A stretch of DNA of 64,000 bases from Podarcis melisellensis (GCA_964234715.1 OZ174278.1), one strand, 5' to 3'. Counted from the stretch's first letter, positions 13,105 through 48,384 are shown. The notes: a model not told the origin generated them from the letters alone. Translations and numbers: made by a program.

Positions 13105-16100
13105 GTAGTGTGATATACTGTCCTTGTGATATTGAAAAGGGATAGAACAACAGGGGTTATTGTTATTTCTGAGAAAATTGCTGAGCTTTCTTTTTGTCAC
13201 CCTTTGGAAAAAAGGCCACTTCTTTTGTAGAATTTTCTCCAAATGTTCTTCACCATTCTTTGTGGCAACCACTGTATTTAACAGTGAAACAAGCCAGTGG
13301 TCAACGAGGACATATTTTCCCCTGTTTCATCTAACTATGTCCATATTTTCCCAAGTTATTCACTCTTAAATATAATTATTTCCCATCTGTGTTTCACAAA
13401 GCACAGTATGTTTTTAACTCCCTGCCAACAAATGTAAAGATACTGTGCCCAACATTTACAGTTCAACAGCATAGAGGAAAGTCCAGACAGATGGCACTCC
13501 TGACTCAGAAAGACATTTTTCTTCTAGGCAACTGACAGGATATGTTGATTTTCAGTTCTGACCTCACTTTCTTGTAATAATCCTGAATAAGATTTATTAC
13601 TTTGAATGGCTGTAAAAGAAGCTTTGGCAGTAGGAAAAATTCCAGATCCCCAATAGAGGCATCTCTCCAAAATATTCTTTTAAAGAGTTGTTCTTTCTAG
13701 AGCTTGAGATCTTTGTTCAGAAGTACTAGTTTTTGGTTTTTTAAAGTATTGATGTCCCTGTCACATTATTTACTTAATTTATTTTTGGGGAAATGGGGGT
13801 GGGGGGACACCTGGAACTACCACTCTGAAATATGGCAGGGTTAATTTCCTATTGGCTGTCCACAATTCAGATTTCACACACCTGCATTAAAAAGTGGCTG
13901 TTTGGGTTCCCCAATGAAAGTAAATGGGAGGCTGAAGCTTTGGTTTTCTGAATTTTGCTTCAGATTTTGGGTTTGAAGTACCCCCGCATGTAATTTAAAG
14001 CATATGGGGGCCTATTTCAAAACACTGAAATTGGGGGGTCCCTCACACAGCCCTAATTTATATTTCCCACAATGCCTCAGAACCATGTCATGTTGGGTTT
14101 TCTCTAGAACTTTGTAAGAATCTTAAATGACGGTTTCAAGCTGTCCCTTTTACCCATAAAAGTACCACTTCCCACAAGCATCCTCTGACCTGAAGGCAAC
14201 CCTGCTTTCTAGATGCCACCCATACAAGAGGTAAGAGTGGCTACTGCATTGGGTGGAGCCTTCTCTGTTGCAGCTTCCACTGGTGCAACAGCTCCACCAA
14301 GGACACCAACCTTCCAGAAGCCATACATGCCTTTCACCTATTCACTAAAAATAATTTTGCTTAATTATATATTCAGTAGCTGTTCTTTGCTGCTTAAGAT
14401 TTGTAGTTTTATAGTTTTCTGTTACCCTTTTTAACCCATTCATGCCCCAAAACAAATATTTGGGAGAATTTTCAGTATTTTATGTGTCACCTATATCTGG
14501 GAAGGTGGCTATTATTCACAGTTTGTTGTCTCTTTTATAATGACTTTACTTTTTCAGAGTAAAGCCTTTGCATACAACCAACCTCCTTTGGGCTTGCTAG
14601 AAGAAAAAAACCAACCATCCCAAAACTATTTATTAATATTTGAAAAGGGCCGAGGTACTTAGATAGAAAGTACCAATGAAATGCAGGACACTATTATAAT
14701 ATGAAACACTTCAAGCATAGAAAAGAATGTAGAAGCATGGCAAGAAGCTCAAGTAATGCAGAGACAATTTCAAGGGAAGATGAAGCAGAGAATAGGATGT
14801 ATATTAAAAGCCAGGTATGTGCATGGGGAAAAAATGCCACCAGGAAAGTGGTTAAAACTTTTTAAGAGATAGTATGGTAAATTATTGTTGGAAGCGACAG
14901 ACATTGAGCTATACTTCAGCTCTCTCAACAAAATAGGCAATGGGAGAGTTGAGAGCATATTTCTTCCAGCCAGAGAAAAAAAGGAAGTAGCATCACTTCA
15001 AAAGGAGCAGAGAACTCTCCTAGTCTTTCGAGTACAGTATATAAGAAGTCACAATGCCAGGCATTGCCAGGAGACTAAAGTTATGACACCACTTCACATG
15101 TTCCTCAGCCTCTTGGTGCCAAAAGCTTTTGTACAGTAAGGAAAACTAAGCAGAGGTTTGGCTGGGTAGGCAAATTAATATGTCTTTCTCGCCAAATGAA
15201 GAACGTTTCTCATCAGAATTTTCTACCTCTGTGGACCTTCTATTCTGCTGGCAGGGGAACTCCCTGAGTGCACAAATGCCATGCCTGCCTCAGAGTCCAA
15301 CCCTCACTGTACTGTGCTATTGGTTGATTATGAGAGCCCCAAAAGTAAAGGATACTGTGCAAGGAAGTACTGTAAATCTCACTCTAAAAGCCAACAGAAA
15401 GTTCATCAACTACTCTGTTGTTATTGTTAATCAAGCCAATGACAACCATGTCTCTTTGTATCCAAGAGTCACCCATCCAGAGCAATCTTTTGATATCTTA
15501 AGCCCTTTACCAAAGTCTATTTTACTAAAGTCTATTTTAACCTTTGTGTACCTGGTTTTTGTAAATCACCTAGAAGCCTATTTTGGTTTTAAGTGATAAA
15601 TAAAATGATGATGATTATAAATATGGCTGTTCTAGATTCTCTGAACTCAATGAGTCTCCCTAAATCTGTCCAAGTGTCTAATGTCCTTATTTTTACTGTC
15701 AGACCAGTTGCCTACCAAAGTTTAGGAGTGTCACCTGGTGTCCACCCCTTTTCCAGTCTGCTGCCACAATAATATGGATAGGTATGATATGTTTTTCATC
15801 TTCTTTCAACCTCTTTTGCCAGTTCCAAAAGCAACTTCTCCTTTTTTGGATGCAGAAAGACCACAATACATTCCACGCAATTGATTCTACCCCACCTCTT
15901 TCTTTCCCTATCTCTTTCTGGGAAAGCTCAGAGTTAATAATTTGGCTACTAATTTACTTTTTCTATTGACCTCATTTTCTGGAAAAGTGCTGACTTTTCT
16001 TCATTGCACCCCAACCTTATGGGGGTACTCTGCTTGCCCAACTAAACTACCAAAATGCCATCCATGCTTGGGCTCCATGTATTTGGTCAAAGGGTTAGAT

Positions 16101-16625
16101 TGGGCTAGCTCTACCAGATTGACAGCAGCTGGTCTTTCACTAGACTAAGATCCACAGTTGCATTGGGAAACGGTTGCCCTAGCAGAACATTTGAACAACA
16201 TTCCACCAATCAGTTTTGTTGCAGGAGAGCTCACTCCTGACCACAGAGAAGTATTCTGTAGATGTGTCCTGAGCAAGAGTGGCAACTCTGAAGCTTCCAT
16301 TCACAGAGTAAAATTGTATTCCACCTCACATTACTAAAGTTAGTAGCAACATTGTCAGGCTTGTTAACCTCCCTTCATTCCCCTTCTGTGCACAGTTCCA
16401 TGTATCAGAGCATCCTGCTATCTAGTTCCTTCCATGTTGGCTGCCATTATGGTGTTCTGGATAAGCAGTAAATACAAAATACCAGTTCTCATAGATGATT
16501 GATTAAACTGACCTAATTTTTAATTTATTATGGTTGTAGCTCAGAGGGACAATTAGCAACAATGCCTACTAAGCTTTATTAACTCTATCTAGATTTTAAA
16601 ACAAACAACCCTAGATCCCCAAAAC

Positions 16626-16985
16626 CAGGGATAAGGAACCTCAGGATTAAGAGGCCAAATGTGGCCCTCCAATCCTCTCTATAAGATCTTTAGAACTCTC
16701 CCCAGGCCACATACATCATTGGACCTGCTTTGCATCCCATGGCTAGGATGTAATAATTGCTTTCACTTATCCTGATTCACTTATCCTTGAGCTCTGTTAA
16801 TGTTTCTGCCTTGTACATTTCAGTGAAGGAGAGAGAGCAGTGCGTGTAGAAACTAGCCTACAAACTGCATTTGTTGCTTCACCCTCTTTTGCCTCTGGCC
16901 CTGCCCACCACAGCCATGTGGGCTTCAGAAGGATATCCAAAAGGAGTCAATCCTTCAACCTGAAATGATTCCCAATACCTACTCA
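16626..16985. mobile_element. Old non-autonomous hAT (Charlie-like) element
   Basis: Starts cagggataaggaacct..ggccaaatgtggccctcc and ends atgtgggc..aaatgattcccaatacct (degenerate TIR). Confidence 0.4.
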
Positions 16986-18019
16986 ATGCCATGCAAATGA
17001 TACTGGATGCAATGGACCTGCCCCAACTTTTTTTTTTTAAAGTCAAGATTTTAAATAATTGACAGGTGGAAGTTGTAGGCAGGATTTACCTACTCCAGAA
17101 AAAAAAATCTATGACCACACAGCAAGTGACATTCTACAAGGTCAGCAAGCATCGTAGGAGCTACGAGGTGCTTATCTGGATAAAGAACTGTCTTGAAGAA
17201 TGAAGACAAATGATATCTGGGAGAGAAAACACTTCAAGATGGATAGAAGTGACAACTACAATGCTGCAAGCCTTCGTATTAGCCTCCTTTGTGTTAACTC
17301 TATATATCAGTTACCGGAAAGAAAGAACATCTAGGCTAGCAGGATACAAGAGATACCCGTGTAATAGAACATAGCTAAAGGCAGGAGCAGAAAGCTTTGT
17401 CTTGCTGCATTGGCCTTCTCATCTCTTGCATTGTTGAATGCCCTAGGAATATGATGTAAAAGAAACTAACAATTCTCTGAAAGGGGGTTGTATATAGATC
17501 ACCTCAAGTCCACTTGGTTATTGTTCCACCGGTCACATGTCCCTCAGATGCTGCCACTTTCCAGTAGGAAATTCAGATTTCAGAAGACTGTGCTTGCATA
17601 GGGTTAAGCAAAAGGAAATTAAAACAAAATCTCTGGTACTACATTTTAAAATTGGACTGGGGAAAGGGTAGTTTATAATATACACCTATGCATGTGTATT
17701 TGAAAACAAGCTCCACAGGGTTCAGTAGGACTTACTATTGTGCAGAGAATTTTTTTAATACACTAAATGAAAACAATTATGTACACCACCTTGAGCTCCT
17801 TGAAGGGCAGATGGAGATCCCAGATTCTTTTAGTTTAGGAAGATTGTGGAAACTCAAAGAACCAGTCACAACCTGCCAATATCAGAAGATAAACAAATAC
17901 ATCAGTTTCTAAATGCCAGAAATAGCCTCCCTAAAAACCATAATGGATAGAACACAATATATTGACAATCTATCAGATGGCAAGGCTTCTGTCTTGTCAG
18001 TTTAAAAAGCCCTATAGAG

Positions 18020-19380
18020 TTGGGTGTTCTTCTCCTCACATTATTTACAAACACTTGATACCAACATTCTTGGTGTCAAAAATCCATAAAACATTCATTT
18101 TATAAATAGCATGAAATATCTCCTGTAGTGTTTTATTGGTGCACAAGAGCCACAAGAAGTTTCCAAAGCAATGGAAAGGATGGCTCATGGTGTCATGGAC
18201 TGGCCAGATGCAGAGGACTGATTTGAGCATTGAAGCTTTAGGAAAGCATCATCATTTGAGTCCATATTCACCAGCAACTGGGAGCCAGAACACTAGTATT
18301 AACCTTTGCTCCCAGAAGCCTGTAAGGTACTGTCCGGTTAACTCTGGCCACAGCTTTATTAACAAACTACAACATGAACCCTTATTAAATGATTAACTCC
18401 AGCTTTTACAAAAGTTAAGTGGAATGGGAGGAAATAGCTAAGATACTGCTGGAGGCACATCAATCTTTTGTTAACACGCCCTTTAGGCAGCTTTAGGTAA
18501 AACAGGCTCACTTTGTGCCTCAGCTATTGAGGAACCAGAACCTTGTGAGTGAAGCAATCATTCTCAGGTTTACTCAGGCTTCTCAGAAAATCCTGTAAGA
18601 ATGTGTATGATATACTTGAAATGCATTAGGCAAATAAACTGAAGTGCTTCTCTAAATGAAATATTTCCTTTAGCAGCTTTTGAGAATTGGCAGCTGAACT
18701 AGTTTAAATTCCTAAAATCCATTCCAGCTTGCCCACCACAACCGATGGCCTCTGGTTCCCACTTTTGCTTCAAGTACTTGCCGCTATCATTCAAGGAGAT
18801 ACTGGTGCTTCCAATTTTATTATGTTGTGGTTTTTTGTGGGTTTTTTTAAAAATACCTTTGGCAAAAATTAACAGTGCCACATTTTCTTGCCAGTTTCAT
18901 TTATTATTATTACTGTTATACCATCTGCATACCAAAGAAAGGGATTAGCACATTCCAACCTCGATAGCTTGAAATCTGAAAATAGACACAAAGGAAATAC
19001 CAGGGTAGTAGATGGAAATGGAGATGGGGAGAACATGCTGCTTTGGAGGGATATAAATTTGATAATGAGTTTGTGATTCTTTGGTGTCATTTACATGCCA
19101 TTTGGTTTTCAGGAAGGTACTGGAGTGAGGGGGCTGTTTTCTTCCAAAGGCTTCACAGAAAAGTGGGGGAAGGGGTTGAGGAGAGATCTGAAGGAAGGCA
19201 AGGAGGTGGTCTGGAAAGCAGTTTGACAAATAAGGGAGGAAGAATTGTTCTGGGGAGTAGGAGAGCTTTGGATGTCTTGCTGGATGAGCAAAAGCCACTA
19301 TTAGGGATCTGTTAGGCTAGAAGAGCAGAGAGATAAGGATTCAGAACAATGAACATGGGCATGAAAGTAGCTTCTACTGA
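18020..19380 (+). repeat. 1,361-bp direct repeat, left copy (abuts the L1 5' end)
   Basis: Identical by eye to 25091-26451 at an offset of 7,071 bp, except A at 18047 versus G at 25118. The ORF track shows the same spurious ORFs twice at that offset. Confidence 0.97.
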
Positions 19381-19700
19381 GACTTCCGGTCGGCTCCAGC
19401 GTTAATGGCGGTCCTTGCTTTGAGCTCCGAAGCAGGACTGCTCCGTGAGTTCGGGTCTGACCCGCTACGGCGAGCGGGGGACCCCTAAAATCACAGGCGC
19501 TGAAGCCTGTGAACAAGGAGATTCGGTGGGCACCTTTGCGCCCCCCGGTATCGCAAAAGAGCCTTTTTAAAGGCTCCGGAGCGGCATCGGGTGTGAGCGC
19601 GGTGCTGAGGATCGCAACCCAGCTCACGGAGCGAAGCCGCGTCGCCATTGACGGAGAGCGCCGATTCCTTCCTGAAACTACCGATTGGAAACAACACCCG
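19381..19700 (+). promoter_or_regulatory. CpG-rich L1 internal promoter region
   Basis: Abrupt GC/CpG-rich block at the element 5' end. ETS-like CTTCCGG and YY1-like AATGGCGG lie in the first ~31 nt. Promoter function is inferred from L1 biology. Confidence 0.65.
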
Positions 19701-20331
19701 TGAGTAAGAACAGTAAAAAAAGGGAACGGGACTTTAAAATTTAAGAAGATTTGGCTGAAAACGGGAGAGGCAAAAATTAAGGAAGTCTGCCCCCCCGGAA
19801 CTACATGATTGACTGAGCAACGAAAAGAGTAAGCTGTGCTTAAAGGGGATGTTTCTATGCTTTTTAACTTCGTTAAACTTGACATCGGAAGAGGACCTCC
19901 CCCCCCAACGAGCAGGAGAGGGGGGGAAGAAATTTGACTTAATTTTATCTGCTCAAGAAAGGAGATTTGAACGGGAAATCTTCCACTGCCGATACCTCTG
20001 GCCAGGCTGCCGGGGCAGTGAGCGCCTGAAGAGAGCTGTCAAACCTGATTGAGGATACAAAGTAAGATTTATCTGATATAAAATAACGGGACTTTAGCGG
20101 ACAAAAACTGTAACATTTTAAACTGCAACAAAGTAGGGTCTTTATTTGGACTTTCGCTTTTGGAACTTTGTATGGCTATTTCTTTCCCTGTTTCTTTGTC
20201 TTTGCATTGGATACAATGTACTCCCTCTAGAGGCTTAAAAGAGAGACTGCTGCATTGAGATATAAACAGTGGGATTTTCCAACTGCAACTGTTCCTGTGG
20301 GAACGACCTTGAGATATGAGCGGCCCACTGG

Positions 20332-21321
20332 ATGAAATATCAACAAGATCCAAAGCAAAACAGGCTCAGGCTCAAAAGAAAAGAGGCAACACAGGAAAGA
20401 ACAACAGCAACACAGGAAAGAACAACAACGGTATCAATGGATTCCATGACACAGGCTCTACTCAGGATAAATGAATCTTTAGAATCATTTACTAGGCAAA
20501 CCACAGAGAACTCCAAGAAACTGACTGAACTGACAACAAGATTGGATTTGAACACGACAATAATATCGACTAATACAGACTCTATAAACCGTTTAATTCA
20601 GGAAAGCACAGAGACGAGGAAAATAGCCGAAAGCGCGAGGACCACGGCCGAGGAAACCAAAGGGAAATTTGTTCCTATTGCAAAGAAGGTACATGAGCAT
20701 GATGAAGCCCTGGCCCTTATGGAACTGGAGAGGAAAGGCAAGAACTTGAAATTGAGACTGGTACCTGAGGAGGAGGAGGACAAGCTCGGGGAATTTCTTA
20801 CAGACAAGTTCCAAGAATTTTGGAGTGAAGAGTTGGGGGAAGAGGAAGAGGATTTTACAATAACTACAGCCTTCCGGATTGGTAGAAAGCAAGGCAAGAA
20901 GCCAAGGGATTGTTTAATAACTTTTAGATCCAAGGAAGAAAGAGATAAAATATTGAACCTACATTTCCAGAGGGCACTGGTTATCAAAAATTCCCAAATA
21001 CAGATCTTCAAAGATATTCCTAGATACTTTTTGGAGGTGAGAACACAATTTAAAGACCTAGTCGACATATTAAAACAAAACAACATCCAATTCAGGTGGG
21101 AATTCCCACAAGGGCTGTCCTTCAACTTCAAAGGGAAGAAAACTAAAATAAAAACAATTCAAGATAAAGAACACTTTTTGGAGAGAAACTTTGAGGACTT
21201 TCAGAAAGGAACTGTAGAGGGGGGAACACTGGATATTACCAACCTATCGTTTGGATTGAACCAAGCACCGACTGACGAGGAACAAGAACTTGGAGCAGTG
21301 GGTGGGAAAAGTACCCAATAA
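20332..21321 (+). CDS. L1 ORF1p (coiled-coil, RRM, CTD RNA chaperone)
   Basis: 329 aa. Heptad-rich N-terminal half, NLKLRLVPE, AFRIG..KPRDCLITF, IQIFKDIP, FRWEFPQGL. The true start codon is uncertain. Confidence 0.9.
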   Translation: MKYQQDPKQNRLRLKRKEATQERTTATQERTTTVSMDSMTQALLRINESLESFTRQTTENSKKLTELTTRLDLNTTIISTNTDSINRLIQESTETRKIAESARTTAEETKGKFVPIAKKVHEHDEALALMELERKGKNLKLRLVPEEEEDKLGEFLTDKFQEFWSEELGEEEEDFTITTAFRIGRKQGKKPRDCLITFRSKEERDKILNLHFQRALVIKNSQIQIFKDIPRYFLEVRTQFKDLVDILKQNNIQFRWEFPQGLSFNFKGKKTKIKTIQDKEHFLERNFEDFQKGTVEGGTLDITNLSFGLNQAPTDEEQELGAVGGKSTQ

Positions 21322-21326
21322 CAAAA

Positions 21327-24300
21327 ATGTCTCTGCAACTTCTGAGTTGGAATTGTAATGGTCTAAACCGTCCCCGAAAAAGAGATCAAGTTTTTCATAT
21401 ATTAAAGAAAGAACAGTTAGATATAATTTGTTTGCAAGAAACCCATATTGCCAGGATACACAGGAAACTTCTGATAAATAAGAGACTAGGATTGGAATTT
21501 GTTTCCTCGGACAAAGTTAAGAAAAGAGGGGTGGTGATTTATGCCAAGGAAAAATGGGAACCAAAAATGATCTTTAAAGATGATGAAGGAAGATACCTGG
21601 GAGTAGAAATTCAAATTCAAGGAGAAAAGATTTTAATTGTTGGAGTTTATGCACCTAACGAGGGGAAGGCAGAGTTCTTCAAGAAGTTGCATGAGACCTT
21701 AATGGACTTTATGGACCTTAAAATTATAATGATGGGAGATTTCAACGGAGTTGTCTCCACAAACATGGACAAGGCACAAAGGCAAGTAATATCCAAGGAT
21801 GGGAGACTACCAAAGACTTTTTTCGAACTCACTGACACCATGGACTTGATCGACATCTGGAGAACTAGGAACCCTCTGGAAAGAGAGGGAACCTTTTTCT
21901 CGGAAGCAAAAATGACCTGGACTAGAATTGATCAAATTTGGATTTCTAGCAGCCTGGCACCAAGAGTGAAAAAAACAGAAATCTGCACAAAAACCTGCTC
22001 CGACCATAACGCAGTTAAGATGGAAATGAAATTAACAACGGCTGGAACCTTCAGATGGAGAATGAATGACACCCTATTTAGAGATGAAGAAATTTATCAT
22101 AAGGCCCAAAAAATATTGAAGGATTACTTTGAGATAAATTTGAGAACGGAGGTGGAAAAAAGAATAGTATGGGACGCAAGTAAGGCCGTGATGCGTGGAT
22201 TCCTAATTCAGCAAAATTCCATAAAAAGGAAGAAACAAAATGAGAGGAAGGAAAAGATTTTGAACCAGATAAAGGAAGGAGAAAAGAAACTGAGATCTAA
22301 GCCGAAGTCTCAAGAGATCTTAAGAGAAATAAAATACCATCAGACGCAATACATGGAATTGATGAATCAGGAAATAGAATGGAAGATAAAGCAAATGAGA
22401 CAAAGGACATTCGAATCGGCAGATAAATGCGGGAAACTGCTGTCATGGCAACTGAAAAAGAGGCAAAAATTAAACACGGTGACATCCCTGGAAATAGATG
22501 GGAAAATTATCAACAAACCAAATGAAATAAGTAATTGTTTTCAAAGTTTCTTCAAAAAACTTTATGCACAAGGGCCTACAAATGAACAAGAAATAGAAGA
22601 ATTTGTTAAAAAATATGGACTACCAAAGATCTCAGAACAAAATAAAAGGATTTTGAATGAAAAAATCACAGAACAAGAAATAGAGGGTGCCATTCAGAAT
22701 ACAAAATTGGGGAAATCACCAGGACCAGATGGTTTAACTGCAAAATACTACAAAGATCTTAAAGAATGGCTAATACAGCCATTGAAGGAAGTATGCAACC
22801 AGATACTAGAGGGGAAAAAGGCTCCCGAATCGTGGAAAGACGCATTCATCTCACTTATACCGAAGACAGAAACTGAGAAACATCAAGTTAAAAACTACCG
22901 CCCTATATCACTCTTGAATGTGGATTATAAAATTTTTGCAGACGTTTTAGCAAGAAGATTTAAGAGAGTTTTGATGGAGGAGATTCATAAGAACCAAACA
23001 GGCTTTCTCCCAGGGAGACATATGTCAGAGAATGTGAGGAACATTATAGACATTTTGGAGATGCTAGAGGTGGACATTAATAGGAAGGCAGTGTTGATCT
23101 TTGTGGATGCGGAGAAGGCCTTTGACAACATTTCTTGGAAATTTATGAAGAAGAATCTCCATGGGATGGGGGTAGGTCAAGGGTTTGAAAACGGTATAGG
23201 TGCAATATATTTTGAACAAAGAGCGAAACTAATTGTGAACAATGTGGTAGTGGATGAAATACCAATAGAGAAAGGTACACGACAGGGATGCCCTATATCC
23301 CCTTTACTGTTTATATCGGTCCTGGAGGTTTTGTTAAATATGATTAGGAGGGACCAGCTGGTAAAAGGAATACAGGTCGGATCTAAACAATATAAGTTAA
23401 GGGCATTTGCAGATGACTTAGTGCTAACTTTGCAACAGCCAGAAGCTAGTACCAAAAGAGTTTTAGAATTAATGGAGATATTCGGCCAGGTCGCAGGATT
23501 TAAATTGAACAAACAGAAAACAAAGGTGCTGGAAAAAAATCTAACAAAAGAGGAGAAAGATAGGTTTCAAAGTGAAACTGGGTTGGAAATAGAAAAAAAG
23601 GTTAAGTACCTGGGGGTGAATCTGACATCAAAAAATGTGAATCTATTTAAAGATAACTATGAAAAATGTTGGACAGAAGTTAAGAAAGATCTAGACATAT
23701 GGTCCAGGCTGAAACTTTCCTTGTTAGGCCGAATTGCTGTTATCAAGATGAATGTATTGCCAAGAATGTTGTTTTTATTTCAGACGCTGCAGATTCTAGA
23801 CAAAATGGACTGTTTCAAGAAGTGGCAGAAAGACATATCTAAATTTGTCTGGCAGGGCAAAAAGCCCAGAATTAAATTTAAGATTTTAACTGACGCAAAA
23901 GATAGAGGGGGCTTCGCCCTGCCAGACTTAAGACTTTATTATGAATCAGCAGCCTTTTGCTGGTTGAAGCAATGGCTACTTCTTGAAGATACAGACATTC
24001 TTGATCTGGAAGGATATGACAATAGTTTTGGTTGGCATGCATATCTGTGGTATGACAAGGTAAAGATTTATAAAAGTTTTAAAAACCATATTGTCAGGAA
24101 AGCATTGTACAATGTTTGGAATAGATATAAGGATTTATTGGAAAGTAAAACCCCTAGGTGGTTGTCACCAATGGAAGCGAAAGCAGTGAAAAAAATTAAC
24201 ATGGACTCTAATTGGCCTAAGTATTGTGAAATTTTAGAATATGATGGCGAGAAACTGAAGCTACGAAGTTTTGAGAAGCTAAAGCATAAAGTTCGAGATT

Positions 24301-25061
24301 GGTTACACTACCGTCAGATAAACGAGATGTTTAAGCAGGACAGGAAACTGGGTTTTCAGAAAGAGAGGTCAAAGTTAGAAACAGAATTGTTAGAATCCAA
24401 TACTAAAAATCTATGTAAAATGTATAATTTGCTGCTGAAATGGAATACACAGGATGAAACAGTGAAATCAGCTATGATCAAATGGGCACAGGATATTGGT
24501 CATGACATTATGTTTGACGACTGGGAACAGTTATGGACCACCGGTGTTAAATTTACGGCATGTAATGCCCTGAAAGAGAATATAATGAAAATGATCTATA
24601 GGTGGTACATGACCCCAGTCAAACTTGCAAAGATCTACCATCTGCCCAATAACAAATGTTGGAAATGTAATGAGGCTGAAGGTACTTTTTATCACCTTTG
24701 GTGGACTTGCCCAAAGATTAAAGCCTACTGGGAAATGATCTATAACAAAATTAAGAAAGTCCTTAAGTGGACGTTTGTAAAGAAACCGGAGGCTTTTCTC
24801 TTGGGCATGGTCGGCCAATTGGTACCAAAGAAGGATAAGACATTTTTTATGTATGCAACCACAGCAGCAAGAATTCTGTTGGCAAAGTATTGGAAGATGC
24901 AAGAATTACCTACTCTGGAAGAATGGCAATCGAAGGTGATAGAATATATGGGACTGGCAGAGATGACCGGCAGAATCCGTGACCAGAGGAAAGAGACAGT
25001 GGAAGAGGACTGGGGGAAATTTAAAATATATTTAAAAAATTATTGTAAAATTGTGGACTGA
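21327..25061 (+). CDS. L1 ORF2p (AP endonuclease, reverse transcriptase, C-terminal CCHC)
   Basis: 1244 aa uninterrupted. APE: SWNCNGLN, CLQETH, GDFN, RIDQIW, SDHNAV. RT: KSPGPDG, YRPISLLNVDYKI, DAEKAFD, GTRQGCPISP, FADD, KYLGV. CCHC: CWKC-x8-H-x4-C. Confidence 0.97.
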   Translation: MSLQLLSWNCNGLNRPRKRDQVFHILKKEQLDIICLQETHIARIHRKLLINKRLGLEFVSSDKVKKRGVVIYAKEKWEPKMIFKDDEGRYLGVEIQIQGEKILIVGVYAPNEGKAEFFKKLHETLMDFMDLKIIMMGDFNGVVSTNMDKAQRQVISKDGRLPKTFFELTDTMDLIDIWRTRNPLEREGTFFSEAKMTWTRIDQIWISSSLAPRVKKTEICTKTCSDHNAVKMEMKLTTAGTFRWRMNDTLFRDEEIYHKAQKILKDYFEINLRTEVEKRIVWDASKAVMRGFLIQQNSIKRKKQNERKEKILNQIKEGEKKLRSKPKSQEILREIKYHQTQYMELMNQEIEWKIKQMRQRTFESADKCGKLLSWQLKKRQKLNTVTSLEIDGKIINKPNEISNCFQSFFKKLYAQGPTNEQEIEEFVKKYGLPKISEQNKRILNEKITEQEIEGAIQNTKLGKSPGPDGLTAKYYKDLKEWLIQPLKEVCNQILEGKKAPESWKDAFISLIPKTETEKHQVKNYRPISLLNVDYKIFADVLARRFKRVLMEEIHKNQTGFLPGRHMSENVRNIIDILEMLEVDINRKAVLIFVDAEKAFDNISWKFMKKNLHGMGVGQGFENGIGAIYFEQRAKLIVNNVVVDEIPIEKGTRQGCPISPLLFISVLEVLLNMIRRDQLVKGIQVGSKQYKLRAFADDLVLTLQQPEASTKRVLELMEIFGQVAGFKLNKQKTKVLEKNLTKEEKDRFQSETGLEIEKKVKYLGVNLTSKNVNLFKDNYEKCWTEVKKDLDIWSRLKLSLLGRIAVIKMNVLPRMLFLFQTLQILDKMDCFKKWQKDISKFVWQGKKPRIKFKILTDAKDRGGFALPDLRLYYESAAFCWLKQWLLLEDTDILDLEGYDNSFGWHAYLWYDKVKIYKSFKNHIVRKALYNVWNRYKDLLESKTPRWLSPMEAKAVKKINMDSNWPKYCEILEYDGEKLKLRSFEKLKHKVRDWLHYRQINEMFKQDRKLGFQKERSKLETELLESNTKNLCKMYNLLLKWNTQDETVKSAMIKWAQDIGHDIMFDDWEQLWTTGVKFTACNALKENIMKMIYRWYMTPVKLAKIYHLPNNKCWKCNEAEGTFYHLWWTCPKIKAYWEMIYNKIKKVLKWTFVKKPEAFLLGMVGQLVPKKDKTFFMYATTAARILLAKYWKMQELPTLEEWQSKVIEYMGLAEMTGRIRDQRKETVEEDWGKFKIYLKNYCKIVD

Positions 25062-25090
25062 TAAGATGACAAGGGGTAAGAAACAAAGAA

Positions 25091-26451
25091 TTGGGTGTTC
25101 TTCTCCTCACATTATTTGCAAACACTTGATACCAACATTCTTGGTGTCAAAAATCCATAAAACATTCATTTTATAAATAGCATGAAATATCTCCTGTAGT
25201 GTTTTATTGGTGCACAAGAGCCACAAGAAGTTTCCAAAGCAATGGAAAGGATGGCTCATGGTGTCATGGACTGGCCAGATGCAGAGGACTGATTTGAGCA
25301 TTGAAGCTTTAGGAAAGCATCATCATTTGAGTCCATATTCACCAGCAACTGGGAGCCAGAACACTAGTATTAACCTTTGCTCCCAGAAGCCTGTAAGGTA
25401 CTGTCCGGTTAACTCTGGCCACAGCTTTATTAACAAACTACAACATGAACCCTTATTAAATGATTAACTCCAGCTTTTACAAAAGTTAAGTGGAATGGGA
25501 GGAAATAGCTAAGATACTGCTGGAGGCACATCAATCTTTTGTTAACACGCCCTTTAGGCAGCTTTAGGTAAAACAGGCTCACTTTGTGCCTCAGCTATTG
25601 AGGAACCAGAACCTTGTGAGTGAAGCAATCATTCTCAGGTTTACTCAGGCTTCTCAGAAAATCCTGTAAGAATGTGTATGATATACTTGAAATGCATTAG
25701 GCAAATAAACTGAAGTGCTTCTCTAAATGAAATATTTCCTTTAGCAGCTTTTGAGAATTGGCAGCTGAACTAGTTTAAATTCCTAAAATCCATTCCAGCT
25801 TGCCCACCACAACCGATGGCCTCTGGTTCCCACTTTTGCTTCAAGTACTTGCCGCTATCATTCAAGGAGATACTGGTGCTTCCAATTTTATTATGTTGTG
25901 GTTTTTTGTGGGTTTTTTTAAAAATACCTTTGGCAAAAATTAACAGTGCCACATTTTCTTGCCAGTTTCATTTATTATTATTACTGTTATACCATCTGCA
26001 TACCAAAGAAAGGGATTAGCACATTCCAACCTCGATAGCTTGAAATCTGAAAATAGACACAAAGGAAATACCAGGGTAGTAGATGGAAATGGAGATGGGG
26101 AGAACATGCTGCTTTGGAGGGATATAAATTTGATAATGAGTTTGTGATTCTTTGGTGTCATTTACATGCCATTTGGTTTTCAGGAAGGTACTGGAGTGAG
26201 GGGGCTGTTTTCTTCCAAAGGCTTCACAGAAAAGTGGGGGAAGGGGTTGAGGAGAGATCTGAAGGAAGGCAAGGAGGTGGTCTGGAAAGCAGTTTGACAA
26301 ATAAGGGAGGAAGAATTGTTCTGGGGAGTAGGAGAGCTTTGGATGTCTTGCTGGATGAGCAAAAGCCACTATTAGGGATCTGTTAGGCTAGAAGAGCAGA
26401 GAGATAAGGATTCAGAACAATGAACATGGGCATGAAAGTAGCTTCTACTGA
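25091..26451 (+). repeat. 1,361-bp direct repeat, right copy (abuts the L1 3' end)
   Basis: Copy of 18020-19380. Confidence 0.97.
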
Positions 26452-28029
26452 ACATGGTGGGAGTTGCTTCTGGGGGCTGCTGCTCCAAAGGACCTGTTTA
26501 TTGACCATTCCTTCTGATTTGCTTGCACAAAGTGATTGTTAGACTATGAACAGTCTTTATTAAGCATTTATTCCATTTTGTCGTGAGGTTATACCGCAAT
26601 GGCCATTCATCCTGCATTGATTCTGATTTGCTTGTGTGCTGTTTATATGTCTTCCCATCATTCATTCATTCCACTTTTCAATGTTTTCCCTGTCACTTTC
26701 CTAATTGCATGAACTTGGTTTCTAAGGTGTCAGAGTGCTTTAATCCACTTTAACTGTATAAACCCAAATTTCCCGTGGGTGCTTGAATCATTCAAAGCAC
26801 TGCCTGTCTAGAGGTATACTGAATTAATGCACCCAGGGTTACACAGGAAGTGGTTTGAACAAATGTATTGCTGTCAGTTATGATGAAAATTTAAAACTGC
26901 ATGCCTGAGCTTTTCGCCTTTCTATAAAATCATATATGCCTAAAAGCAAACCTTAGTTGAAAAGGTTTCTCTGTATAGACACATTCTCTTCATGCACCAT
27001 AAGCTGAAATGCCTGGACTCCTCATACTGTAATGTGCCACATTCATTTTTGATATTCATTTTGAATCTCTTCTATCCTAATATAGCTTCCCATTCCTCAT
27101 ACCCTTTTGTTGCAAGGATAATTGACCCTCGTTGACCTTATCAGGATTTAAAAGCTGACAAAAATGCCCCACTGCTCAAAACCTGAGATTTACATATAAA
27201 AATTATATAGTTGTGACTTTTGCTAAGCAAAAAATTGCTCAATGAGTGAACAAAAGCTATGAAGATAGATTTCACTTAAGTAATTGGCTCTCTTTCTATT
27301 ACTTCTGGCCCATTAAATTTGTCAGTAAAATACATGAGCACGTAAGGTCAATGATCAAAGAATGTTTACAGGTGTAATCAGTTTAAAATGAGATAATTAG
27401 GCACATTATCACAGTTAAGTGAATTGCAGAAATTAGAAATGGGAAGTACTGTTAGGTCACTTTGTCAATCTCACAAATGAAGCTGGTTTGTTTTCTAGAT
27501 TGGCAAACAGGAGTGTTTTTTTTAAAAAAATACACTATTCTAGACGGGAAATATTGAGAATAGCATTACTCAAAGGTTTTAAGGATGAAAGGTATCCAGA
27601 TTTTTAAGGATGAAAGTAACCAGCAATTCTTGCAGAAGCTTACTTGGTTCTACTGGATATGTCACTAAAACGATAGTATGAATAAAGTATTCAATGAAAT
27701 GTCATTGAGGATTGTGCCTAAATATGTTGAAATTAATATAGCAATGGTGGAAAGCCGAGCTGGTCTATGGAAAATACATGTTGTTCTTCCCTGTGGACCA
27801 TTTTAAACATCATCTATATTTTCTTGTTGCCTTTTTGCTATGTCATCATAACCACTATGCCTGATCCTGAAGGGACTTGCACTGTACATATCTAAGGCAG
27901 TCTTAGGGATGTTTCTGATACTGTTGAGACGTATGACCACATGAAATTTATGAATAAAGGTCTAACAATGTAAGAAATGCTTGAATAAATAAATAGCACA
28001 ATAAATGGTTAAAAATAATGTCTCAAACC

Positions 28030-28826
28030 CTCAGTGAGTTAGGGACTTCCCCTACATGCAAAGATGGGCTCACGTGGATTGAGTAGATAAGACCAACAGT
28101 GGGTCCAATGGTGAAAAAGGCGGTTTCTGCATGTGCTGTAGAGGGAAATGAGGGGCAGATGGGTCAAGCTGGAAGGGTAGCCCATCTAGGAGGTCTAAAG
28201 CTCCCCAGCCTTGCGCTTATACTCATTTGTGAGAAAGGCTTCAGGAATAAACCCCAAGGAAAATTCCTACCCGCTGCCTTGCAGGACATCTTTGGGGAAA
28301 GAAAAGGATAAAGAGTAAACACTACACAAATCCAGAGTGGAGTCCCTAAGATGGTTGGATAGCATCTTCTATGTCTCCTTCCAGCAACTCCTACAACCAA
28401 GCTGCTGCCAAATGTATTGCTTTCCTTTCCTTGGACCCAGTGGCAGAGGAAGGGGGGCGGTGGGGGCGGTTCGCCCTGGGTCTCACCACTGAGGGGGGTG
28501 ACAAAATACTGGGCAGCACTCACTGTGGGGCCTGCAGTGCGCCTGAGCCACACATGTCTCCTGGAAGTGATGTGGTGGCTCGGGCGCCCACAGGCTTCAC
28601 TCTGCCCAAACGATCCACCCACTGCCTCCCCCCCCCAGCTGTAGGGTGGCTGAGTGGGAGGAGGCAGGCAGACTCTGGAGGCCCCACGGTGCACCCCACC
28701 CCGCCCCTGGGCATGCCACCCCAGGTGCCTGAGCGGCTTCCTCCACCACTGCTTGGACCACATTAGTGAGACCAAGAGTGGGATCTTGTCAAATGGGCAG
28801 CCCAGGACCTTCATATACACTGCCCA
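28030..28826 (+). mobile_element. Old LINE 5' region, probably RTE-clade, interrupted by a hAT element
   Basis: Resembles a recurrent squamate repeat (ggaagggcagcccatctaggag..gtggagtccctaagac..gggcagcccaggacctccatacacactgccc). It reads continuously across the insertion at 28438-28751. Family assigned from memory only. Confidence 0.4.
28438..28751. mobile_element. GC-rich non-autonomous hAT element
   Basis: TIR CAGTGGCAGAGGAAG / CTTCCTCCACCACTG. Perfect 8-bp TSD cttggacc at 28430-28437 and 28752-28759. Homologue at 49739. Confidence 0.9.
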
Positions 28827-31800
28827 CTTCTAATGCAGCAAAAATGATGAGAGAGGCAGCTGTTACAAGCTACTGGTTACTGCAGCCACAGTAGGTGCTG
28901 TGATTCTCCAGCGGTTTGACTCTGCCCTCAGAGGCTCATTCTTTGTCTATTGAGACAACTACCTACTTGTCTATTGAGCCAGACAGATGCCAACAATACA
29001 TGTATACTCAAAAATAAGTCCCATTGAATTAAAATGGGCTTACTGCCAAATAAATGGATATAGGATTACAGTCTATGCAACCTGGGAGCAAGTCCTTTTG
29101 ATGTCTATGGGGTCAACTCAGAACATAATGTATAAGATTGCACTGTTGGCATTTTATTATGAGGTTGACATTAGTTATATACATACAAAATAATTGTAAT
29201 GAATCCAATTACGTATCCTTGCAATTATTTCACTATTCCCCTTCATCTAAGAATCAATATAAGCAGTGAGATGCTACATTATATCAGACTTCCCAATCCT
29301 TGGCTAAATTATCTATTGCTTTAAGGTAGACTTTCTTTCTCTCCCCCCCCCCCAGTACCTGTATAGTTTGCAGTGAAGCTATAACAGACATTCCAACATT
29401 ATTAAAGAAAAATCTTTCCCATTCTACTCATACCTAAGTTTAAGTCAAGACTCAGCTCTCCATATAATAGACCTCTTTAAGAGAGTAGAACTGTTGGTCG
29501 ATAATGGGATATGGTATTAGAAGTTCAGATCTGAACATGAATGGGAACAGAGCTGAAGTCATTATTAGCTGAAAGTAGCTTGGGTAGACTCTGTGAAAAT
29601 GAGTTGATCACTCCCAATCAGAAAGAGGAGAGACAAATGAGAAGTCAAGCACCTCCCAAACTGGCAGATGTTAGGGAGCTATTTTGCCCTTGCACCAACA
29701 GGCTTCTATTCCATTTTTTTTTCTTTCAAGAAGATGAGGAGTCCAAGAGCACTCTGTTCTTTTTTCCCCTATAAACATTTCTTCCTTGAAAGATAAGAAA
29801 TGTATTTGCACATGAAACTGGAATCTTCTGCTTTTTCCAATGTTTTTAAATGGAAGAGGTCTCTCTAAGCACTGTCAATCTGCCATTTCTCATGAGAGTC
29901 CTTTGCACTCCTTTCCCCCCTGCTCACCTCCCCCTCAAGTCTGTTCCCCCTGCTGAATTAAATCAACTTCTACTGGAGCCTGGAGTATTTGGAAGGCTTT
30001 TAACAACAGACTCTGCAGGGAGAGAAATGCCGTAGATCAGCCTTGAAGGTTGAAACAGAGGATTTCAGCACACTTATCCACTCTAATCATAGTTATCTTG
30101 ATCATGCAGTTTATATCCCCAGTGGCCAGCCAGAGCTGTGCAAGTTGGGACCATGCCTAGAAGGTAGGCACACTGCCTCTTAAGTATTTCTCTGCAGCTG
30201 TAGTTCACACTGTCATGTTTTGTTTAAGCAAAAGGACTACAAGTTCATTTCTGGTATAACCGTTTGTGAAAAGAACACAAAAAACCGCCCACCTTCACCT
30301 GCAGCCTTTGCATTCACCTCTGCAGCACAGATGTCACAGTCTTTGTGTCTGAAGGATGTGGACATATTCCAAGCTAAATCCACCTGTGCCTTACATTGAA
30401 CTTAGGAGTTATGATATGTACATGAGCACAATGCAGACTTTTTGAAGAAAGGCAAGGTAAGTGATGATAAGGAAGGCTCATGCCTTCCGCTGACATGCAT
30501 TGGGTGACAACATTGTTCCTTTGATACAGAAGTATTTCTATGCTGTCGCATCATAGGCTATCATGGTGGTGTACAATAAACCATGAAACACCATTTAAAA
30601 GAATACAATAGTAATTAATGTGACTGGTTAATCAATTTAAACAGCTTACAAAGACCTACCTGCATAAAAAGCACAAAGATGCCTGGAAGTCAAAGGATTA
30701 CGACTGAATGTCTGCAGGCCAAATTCCACTAAATGTTTGGCTTTGAGTGAAGGTGTCAGGCCTCTGCAACATGGGGGCCAACTAACAGCACCTCTGTGGA
30801 TCAGCTAAGTGATCAAATTGGGATATAAGGGCTGAGTTGTTCCTGAAGGTATCCTGGATCCAAGTTGCTCAGGGCTTTGTATGTCAACACAGGAAATGTG
30901 AACCTGTCCCCATAGCATTTAAAAACTGTTTTTAGGGCCGAAAGGCCCCAAATTTGTGAACAGTATTAATACATATTATAGAAGAAATATATGATAAAAA
31001 TGCAATACATATACTAGTGCAATCAAAACACACTCTCATTTTTTTTAAAAAAAACAATAATAAGCAAATTCACTCAAAGATACTAGTTACATAATAGCAT
31101 CTAGTTACCAACATGTGCAGCACACACAGGGTGGCAGAAATCTGCAGTCCTCACTGCCTTCTATGCAAAAGCAAGGAAATATTTACTGGTATCTTTCTTA
31201 TCACATGGCATGTTACATGCTGGACTCTTCCAATACATCCGGCACACTCTTCATGTATTCTAAAGTGCAGATTTTTGCAACACTAAGGCATGCACAGAGG
31301 CTACTGCCTCTAACTGCCATCTCCAGGCCTAAACATCTGTGTGGATCAAGAAAAAATGGCAGCAGGCTGAGGAATCAATAGCATAAATGCTGATGCTCTA
31401 CACAGTTTTGGCCCACTCCCAGTTATTGTTTTGGCTGCCCATCCTAAATACTTGTAGGGAACTGGAAGAGATGGTATCAGGCCCGATTAGTAGGCAGACC
31501 AATAACAGGTAAGCACACTTCTTTACAGAATTCCCCCCCACCCCACATCCCTGCTGTAAAACTAGATCATGGTCCTTAATTGAAGTTTAAAAATTCCAGT
31601 CATTATGTAATAACAGCCAATTCTAGTGACTGAATTTGAAGGCTTCATAACATATGAGGCAAGACACTGGCTACTTTTGCCTCATCTGTTTTTTCCCTTC
31701 TTGCTTCGGAAATAAAATCTTTTTCCCCCTCTGCCTGTACTTTGAACAACACAAAGTATTGCTAAATGATATTGACAATCATAAATAGGGAACAAAATTA

Positions 31801-47709: not shown

Positions 47710-48384
47710 GGCGGAGATGAAATAGCGTACAGGGGGGAGGTTCAAAAACTATCTATATGGTGCTTAGAGAATAACTTGCACCTAAATATTAGCAAGACAA
47801 AGGAGATGGTCTTGGACTTTCGGAGGAAGAGAGGGGAACCGGCCCCGTTATATATCGGGGGGGGGGGCTGTGTGGAGAGAGTCTCCTCCTTTAAATTCCT
47901 GGGAGCTTACCTTAGTGAGGACCTCACTTGGAAAATCAACATAACTCAGATGGTCAGAAAAGCCCAACCGAGACTCCATTTCCTCAAGGTCTTGCGAAAG
48001 AATAATGTTAAACAACAGCTGATGAACTCCTTTTACCGGTCCACAATAGAAAGTGGCCTGACAGCCACGGAAAGAAAGTCTCTACAGAGGGTAGTGAATA
48101 CAGCACATGATATCATGGGCTGTCCCTTGAGTCCACTAGATGACATCACAAGGCTAGCACCTCTTTAATCTTCTACCCTCGGGCAGGAGATATAGAAGTA
48201 TAATCAGCTGTACCAACAGGCTAAAAAATAGCTTCTATCCGTGGGCTGTTAGGCTGTAGAACGGAAAATAACATAGTGCAATTGACTTGCAAGGTGGTGT
48301 GTTGTTCGATAAGAGAATGAGTGCTTGGGGGGGGGAGGCTCATTTAATTTCATTGTACAATGTACATTGTACAAGACAATAAAT

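Follow-up and report, generated by a model that had tools for sequence, protein, structure and literature searches.

Previous studies showed that retrotransposition of L1 elements can duplicate long segments of host DNA around the new insert. In nucleotide excision repair (NER)-deficient cells, the target site duplications (TSDs) of L1 insertions had a median length of 1,495 bp (range, 5 bp to 5.3 kb), those of >100 bp being dominant, and ‘tailless’ inserts were recovered as well; fewer than 10% of L1 events in HeLa cells had a TSD of >100 bp (PMC5223499). When long TSDs did form in HeLa cells, they accompanied 5′-truncated inserts, and full-length inserts had TSDs of 10-17 bp (PMC2912911). 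Tandem duplications of 1-10 kb at L1 sites in tumours and in L1-expressing clones have been termed large TSDs (Mendez-Dorantes et al., 10.1101/2024.12.14.628481), and L1 elements bridging sister chromatids were described by the pan-cancer whole-genome analysis (PCAWG, PMC7058536). The outcome has also been seen with the zebrafish L2 element ZfL2-2, for which Suzuki et al. 2009 (PMC2666801) recorded 25 wild-type insertions in chicken DT40 cells, one of them with a 1,228-bp TSD. Reports of large TSDs by Gilbert in 2002 and 2005 and by Symer in 2002 are among the earlier work cited in Servant et al. 2017 (PMC5223499). Here, we analyzed an L1 element in a 64,000-nucleotide stretch of DNA from the lizard Podarcis melisellensis (GCA_964234715.1 OZ174278.1; the whole stretch is referred to as the window), in which the L1 is bracketed by two copies of a 1,361-bp segment of host DNA.

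A preliminary description of this window had suggested that such a structure might represent a new L1 integration route that duplicates kilobases of host DNA. This claim of novelty does not hold, as TSDs of 100 bp to 5.3 kb and large TSDs of 1-10 kb had already been described (PMC5223499, 10.1101/2024.12.14.628481, PMC7058536, PMC2666801). The locus is instead a natural germline case, in a non-mammal, of a rare but known aberrant outcome of L1 insertion, and it calls for no new mechanism.

Architecture of the locus

The locus has the order X-A-L1-A-Y, in which X and Y are the outer flanks and A is the duplicated segment. Comparison at an offset of 7071 reproduced the repeat given in the preliminary description: the left copy, A1 (18020-19380, plus strand), and the right copy, A2 (25091-26451, plus strand), were identical at 1360 of 1361 positions, and just beyond both ends of the duplication identity dropped to background (~25%). 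A chance match between A1 and A2 is impossible. The sole mismatch is an A at 18047 versus a G at 25118. Neither a third copy of A nor a second copy of the same L1 was found in the 64-kb window, which contains no N letters, so that the assembly is gap-free here.

Segment A begins with TTGGG and finishes with CTGA, without TG..CA ends. It abuts the L1 exactly on both sides, as had been described earlier; on the left the joint lies at the 5′ terminus of the L1 family, and on the right at an internal position of the 3′ untranslated region (UTR). The L1 has neither a poly(A) tail nor a short TSD, and the 1,361-bp duplication is the only one at the element.

Segment A is host DNA

To establish the nature of A, we aligned the public Logan contigs of four runs to positions 23600-27600 of the window. 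Run X15 carries the same species label and is probably the source sample, X1 is another individual of that species, and X3 and X13 represent two other species; each Logan contig has a single depth value. A was found on contigs of single-copy depth in all four runs, except for one ~130-nt segment whose depth was raised in each of them. Long contigs began to fit exactly at 25087, and contigs from X15, X1 and X3 crossed the A|Y boundary into Y, those of X3 spanning 26451/26452. The X15 contig (9,359 nt) showed two differences from the window in 2.5 kb. One is the A at 25118, which is the A1 allele, and the second would lie at 25090, where X has G. Because its two differences sit where X-A1 departs from L1-A2, this contig corresponds to X-A1 on its left and to A-Y on its right. 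The X1 contig (7,203 nt) had 20 substitutions relative to the window. The X13 contig (4,232 nt) fits only 25087-25410 and runs 3,889 nt further left, and a separate X13 contig crosses into Y.

Position 25087 is the start of an AGA that X (18016-18018) and the L1 (25087-25089) share at their ends. A contig running into the L1 would still fit to the left of 25087, and therefore the left neighbour of A in the long contigs is not L1; the common AGA(G) start, together with the two differences in X15, points to X as this neighbour in the other samples. High-copy contigs of the L1 family, seven in X15 and six in X1, stopped fitting at 25092 and went on with ACAGCTGTAAATGTTAAAC. Because these 13 family contigs carry other sequence beyond 25092, the 3′UTR of the family is unrelated to A.

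Altogether, these results indicate that A is host DNA, which is single-copy, contiguous with Y and preceded by a non-L1 neighbour in a second individual and in two other species, and that the empty-site form X-A-Y exists. The impression in the preliminary description that A looks like ordinary host DNA was thus borne out, and its alternative that A might be attached to many L1 copies was not, as the other family copies differ from the window past 25092. The locus accordingly has the make-up of a large TSD, namely contiguous target DNA duplicated at both ends of one L1, with an empty site X-A-Y. The position equivalent to 18047/25118 reads G in X1, X3 and X13; since all three carry G, this base is ancestral, so that A1 has the derived A and A2 the ancestral G.

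Two further observations were made on these contigs. Segments 25208-25341, within A, and 26414-26815 had a summed contig depth 5- to 70-fold over single-copy in the four runs, with many joints at 26525-26533, and they look like older interspersed repeats, one in A and one in Y just to the right of the A|Y break. At 25112-25118, X1 yielded two contigs of approximately equal depth: the long X-A-Y contig with a 5-nt deletion, and a short one without the deletion that ends before 25127 and may represent a branch of allelic origin or a fragment from a junction.

The L1 is 5′-complete and 3′-truncated

The L1 between the copies of A (19381-25090, 5,710 bp) has a 951-nt 5′UTR (19381-20331, plus strand) followed by two open reading frames (ORFs), both open. 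We compared its ends with those of related L1s, with 77-81% nucleotide identity, at three P. lilfordi loci (L001, L002 and L003). The full-length relative at L001 is flanked by a 14-bp TSD (CAAATTTGCAGATG) and has a 3′UTR of ~300 nt with an AATAAA signal and a poly(A) tail. The relatives at L002 and L003 both end in A-rich tails, with TSDs of 15-16 bp and ~39 bp, respectively; overall, the 3′UTRs of the relatives are ~300-400 nt long, with AATAAA and A-rich tails.

At its 5′ end, alignment with the relative's 5′ end (L001:5430-5843) covers the window L1 from its first bases on. It begins at the GACTTCCGGTCGGC terminus as that relative does, after one G, the two ends reading G-ACTTCCGGTCGGC at 19381 in the window and GG-ACTTCCGGTCGGC at L001. 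The window L1 is therefore 5′-complete. The single G at its start may derive from the cap, and the A1|L1 junction has no microhomology with the flank; an extra G and lack of microhomology were reported for the 5′ junctions of full-length L1 inserts (PMC11702581).

The 3′ end is truncated. Only 29 nt of 3′UTR follow ORF2 (25062-25090, plus strand; 31 nt counting the shared TT at 25091-25092), and about 300 nt or more of 3′UTR and the tail are missing. The preliminary description of an intact L1 thus stands for the ORFs and fails for the 3′ end, where most of the 3′UTR and the tail are gone. Of the hallmarks of canonical target-primed reverse transcription (TPRT), the window L1 has neither a tail or intact 3′ end nor a short TSD (about 7-20 bp). 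Because the element is 3′-truncated and tailless, ordinary poly(A)-primed TPRT did not make its 3′ junction. Given the A-rich tails and the 14- to 39-bp TSDs of the relatives, the window copy is an exception in a clade that normally integrates canonically.

One of the relatives has a structure of its own. At L003:9230-15140 (P. lilfordi OX395133.1), L1 pieces are arranged head to tail (the middle of ORF2; the 3′ end of ORF2 with 3′UTR and tail; and again ORF2 with 3′UTR and tail), all of them inside one ~39-bp direct repeat (ACAAATTTGACCACTAAAGTAGAGACACTGACAAAGAAA). This array arose either by nested or tandem insertion of L1s or by template switching.

A single aberrant retrotransposition event probably produced the duplication

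The junctions give indications of how the insert was primed. The target-side sequence ATAGAGTT at the X|A boundary (18014-18021, plus strand) matches the L1 3′UTR sequence AAAGAATT (25085-25092) at 6 of 8 positions. The TT at 25091-25092 is common to the L1 3′UTR and the start of A, and since it fits both sides, the L1|A2 junction is ambiguous by 2 nt. Nearby, TTTAAAAA (18001-18008) is a perfect TT/AAAA target of the L1 endonuclease (EN) type; a bottom-strand nick there would fall at 18003/18004, and the duplication starts 16 nt to its right. The motif reads TT/AAAAA at 18002-18008; a post hoc test gave ~2.2% as the expected share of the window's host positions with a perfect TTAAAA so near and on the correct strand. 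No EN-type motif was found at the A|Y break (CTACTGA/ACATGG).

We consider it likely that one aberrant germline L1 retrotransposition event in a Podarcis-type lizard, primed in the 3′UTR, left the 1,361-bp TSD, i.e., an L1-bridged small tandem duplication. Starting from a pre-insertion site X-A-Y, the first strand would have been primed not on the poly(A) tail but within the 3′UTR, ~30 nt past the ORF2 stop, by a host 3′ end at X|A that paired via 2 nt (6/8 over the longer stretch). The probable source of this primer end is an EN nick 16 nt further left, at TT/AAAAA, after which the unpaired flap would have been trimmed; alternatively, the end may have been supplied by a pre-existing nick or a nascent strand. 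Synthesis of cDNA on a full-length L1 RNA would have continued up to the capped 5′ end, and the cDNA end would have been linked, in a manner resembling non-homologous end joining, to a top-strand end at A|Y, 1,361 bp downstream, with no microhomology involved. Fill-in would then have placed A on either side of the L1. Three sources are conceivable for the distant end, among them a remote second nick on the same duplex, as proposed by Servant et al. (PMC5223499), and a break on the sister chromatid, as in the PCAWG events (PMC7058536). Of the possibilities put forward in the preliminary description, the best support goes to retrotransposition with its two host breaks separated by 1.36 kb.

Several points weigh against this interpretation. 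The X|A junction itself does not match the EN consensus (GAG/TTGG; bottom strand CCCAA/CTCTA). The window L1 is full-length and has a long TSD, whereas the long TSDs in HeLa cells went with 5′-truncated inserts (PMC2912911). The three sub-mechanisms for the distant end predict one and the same final sequence and are therefore inseparable here. In addition, no contig bridging L1|A2 (25090/25091) or A1|L1 (19380/19381) was seen among the Logan contigs of the four runs, and the sole X15 contig over 25118 has the A1 allele and follows the path X-A-Y. This X15 pattern fits a heterozygous empty allele or graph simplification and gives no positive support for the filled form.

Alternative explanations

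We give some weight, if small, to a two-step history, in which a poly(A)-primed EN insertion at TT/AAAAA first produced a 1,377-bp TSD starting at 18004 and a deletion of ~350-400 bp between AAAGAATT and ATAGAGTT followed, whereby the remaining 3′UTR and the poly(A) tail were lost and the right TSD copy was shortened by its first 16 nt. Such a history would jointly account for the EN-type site 16 nt to the left, the 6/8 microhomology at the junction and the missing tail. However, it needs two rare events while just one substitution arose in 1,361 bp, and single events have yielded inserts that were tailless and had long TSDs (PMC5223499).

An assembly artefact, in which a false tandem duplication of A was built around a heterozygous L1 insertion, had been raised in the preliminary description and would agree with the 9.4-kb X15 contig that follows X-A-Y and with the lack of any X15 contig with G at 25118 or across L1|A2. 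With contigs as the sequencing evidence, we judge it unlikely on structural grounds and assign it little probability. The window sequence is free of gaps, and it contains two novel junctions, one precisely at the 5′ terminus of the L1 and one at a microhomology; an empty haplotype mixed with a conventionally filled one would yield neither. Moreover, the difference between A1 and A2 is a real polymorphic site (G in the other three runs) with its alleles placed consistently. Logan contigs prune rare branches beside high-copy repeats, and because contig building drops thin links into such repeats, the missing bridging contig is weak evidence.

Slighter still is the chance of a DNA-level event without an RNA intermediate, i.e., template switching by fork stalling and template switching (FoSTeS) or microhomology-mediated break-induced replication (MMBIR), which would have copied an L1 from elsewhere into a tandem duplication of A. 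The 3′ truncation of the inserted L1, its lack of poly(A) and the microhomology at L1|A2 would all be in keeping with such copying, but the insert begins precisely at the 5′ end of the L1 transcript after a single G, where a random breakpoint would rarely fall, no donor flank was carried along, and the A1|L1 junction is without microhomology. Finally, the ORF2 stop lies just 29 nt before A2, with no tail between, as would be seen if A were part of the element (a long 3′UTR in a head-to-tail tandem of a 5′-truncated and a full-length copy, or an LTR-like terminal repeat), but there is practically no room for this explanation, given a single-copy A (joined, in other individuals and species, to Y on the right and to sequence other than L1 on the left), 13 family contigs that diverge from A past 25092, unrelated 3′UTRs of 300-400 nt in the relatives, and the absence of TG..CA ends.

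Both forms of the latter explanation had been considered as candidates and were rejected. The initial guess that A is the L1's own long 3′UTR was ruled out by the single-copy host contigs and the differing family 3′UTR, and the view of A as the long terminal repeat (LTR) of an LTR retrotransposon by its TTGGG...CTGA ends, by its presence as host DNA in other species and by an interior that is a long interspersed nuclear element (LINE) with APE and reverse transcriptase domains.

Age and polymorphism

The preliminary description had called the event very recent, and the single difference between A1 and A2 in 1,361 bp agrees with this. The window haplotype and X1 differ at 20 positions in ~2.5 kb, and these two values indicate that haplotypes within the species had diverged before A was duplicated. 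These haplotype differences suggest that the insertion is probably polymorphic.

Coding capacity of the L1 and neighbouring sequence

ORF2 (21327-25061, plus strand, 1244 aa, open) encodes APE endonuclease and reverse transcriptase domains, with Pfam matches to PF03372 (E=2e-14) and PF00078 (E=3e-36). It aligned with human L1 ORF2p over residues 4-1205 (E=1e-177); its N-terminal APE endonuclease and its reverse transcriptase are thus collinear with L1 ORF2p, as expected for the L1 clade. The nearest ORF2 proteins are from Podarcis muralis (1244 aa, 95% identity), followed by other lacertid and Anolis L1s, which marks the genome as that of a lacertid of wall-lizard type.

The homologues of ORF1 (20332-21321, plus strand, 329 aa, open) include an ‘L1 transposable element RRM domain’ protein, the UniRef name carried by a P. 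lilfordi homologue with 48% identity. No Pfam family reached threshold for ORF1, and Tnp_22_dsRBD appeared only below threshold (E=0.08). The closest ORF1 match is 79% identical, and its Logan contigs reach no more than 673 nt upstream, short of the 5′ terminus. Within ORF1, a perfect 21-nt tandem duplication at 20386-20427 doubles the heptapeptide ATQERTT near the N-terminus. Look-ups of exact products returned no record for the window ORF2, for its closest P. muralis homologue, or for a minus-strand ORF across the A1|L1 junction.

The first polyadenylation signals past the tailless L1 fall within A2 (ATTAAA at 25455 and AATAAA at 25704), and therefore transcripts of this L1 would include 0.4-0.65 kb of A. 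No amplification of A was visible in the contig depth of the four runs.

Elsewhere in the window, Rfam gave no match in 16000-29000, and Pfam scans of the other long ORFs of the window revealed no host gene. A 130-aa ORF at 47776-48168 matched PF09004 (ALKBH8_N) with E=3e-15; this family often matches the C-terminal part of CR1-like LINE ORF2s, and the ORF is probably a LINE fragment rather than a host gene. At 28001-29000, G+C content peaks at 0.53, versus ~0.40 around it, and overlapping ORFs of 218 and 131 aa lie on opposite strands without a Pfam match; this segment may be a CpG island.

Significance and comparison with known systems

To date, the known kilobase TSDs and small tandem duplications bridged by L1 stem from engineered assays, from cells deficient in repair and from tumours. 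The present case, clean, heritable and very young, comes from a wild vertebrate and shows that the large-TSD outcome reaches the germline; its junctions are legible at base resolution. Stretches of host DNA as large as exons can be duplicated in this way, and recombination between the resulting 1.4-kb direct repeats can later remove the element. Models of second-strand cleavage and flap processing stand to gain from a case that unites a full-length insert, a large TSD, internal priming in the 3′UTR and an EN-type site 16 nt away.

If this young lacertid L1 lineage recurrently used a germline route that is independent of poly(A), primed by microhomology (e.g., from replication intermediates) and accompanied by host breaks a kilobase apart, it would be a regular generator of kilobase host duplications; the tailless, ORF-intact window copy might then still be active and take parts of A elsewhere by 3′ transduction. 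We regard this as scarcely likely. The preliminary description had entertained recurrence in the family, of which there is no sign in the three P. lilfordi relatives, with their TSDs of 14, 15/16 and ~39 bp and their A-rich tails.

The window locus resembles the insertions of Servant et al. 2017 (PMC5223499) in that 0.1-5.3 kb of host DNA was directly duplicated around the L1 and some inserts were tailless; the cause proposed there was a distant second-strand break. Unlike those engineered human L1s in repair-deficient or HeLa cells (PMC5223499), the element studied here is an endogenous lizard L1 of full length with intact ORFs and resides in a germline genome. With the events of Mendez-Dorantes et al. 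and PCAWG it shares a tandem duplication with L1 at the junction, and full-length inserts with an extra 5′ G and no microhomology. Those events, however, were somatic and mostly polyadenylated at EN motifs, whereas the window L1 has no poly(A) and its EN-type motif is 16 nt off.

Endonuclease-independent L1 insertions (Morrish 2002; Sen et al. 2007, PMC1920257) are likewise 3′-truncated and without poly(A), with 3′ microhomology and a non-EN junction. They differ in having no TSD, in being usually accompanied by target deletions and in being mostly 5′-truncated (PMC1920257), whereas the window L1 is 5′-complete within a 1.36-kb duplication. With respect to the non-classical L1 insertions (NCLIs) of Sen et al. 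2007, the window L1 has the 3′ truncation of >25 bp, the lack of poly(A) and the deviant EN site, but departs from the absence of a TSD through its 1,361-bp duplication. Finally, the insertion of ZfL2-2 (PMC2666801) also had a kilobase TSD, and thus this outcome is not specific to human L1; in contrast to the germline lizard L1 described here, ZfL2-2 belongs to another LINE clade and was studied in an experimental assay.

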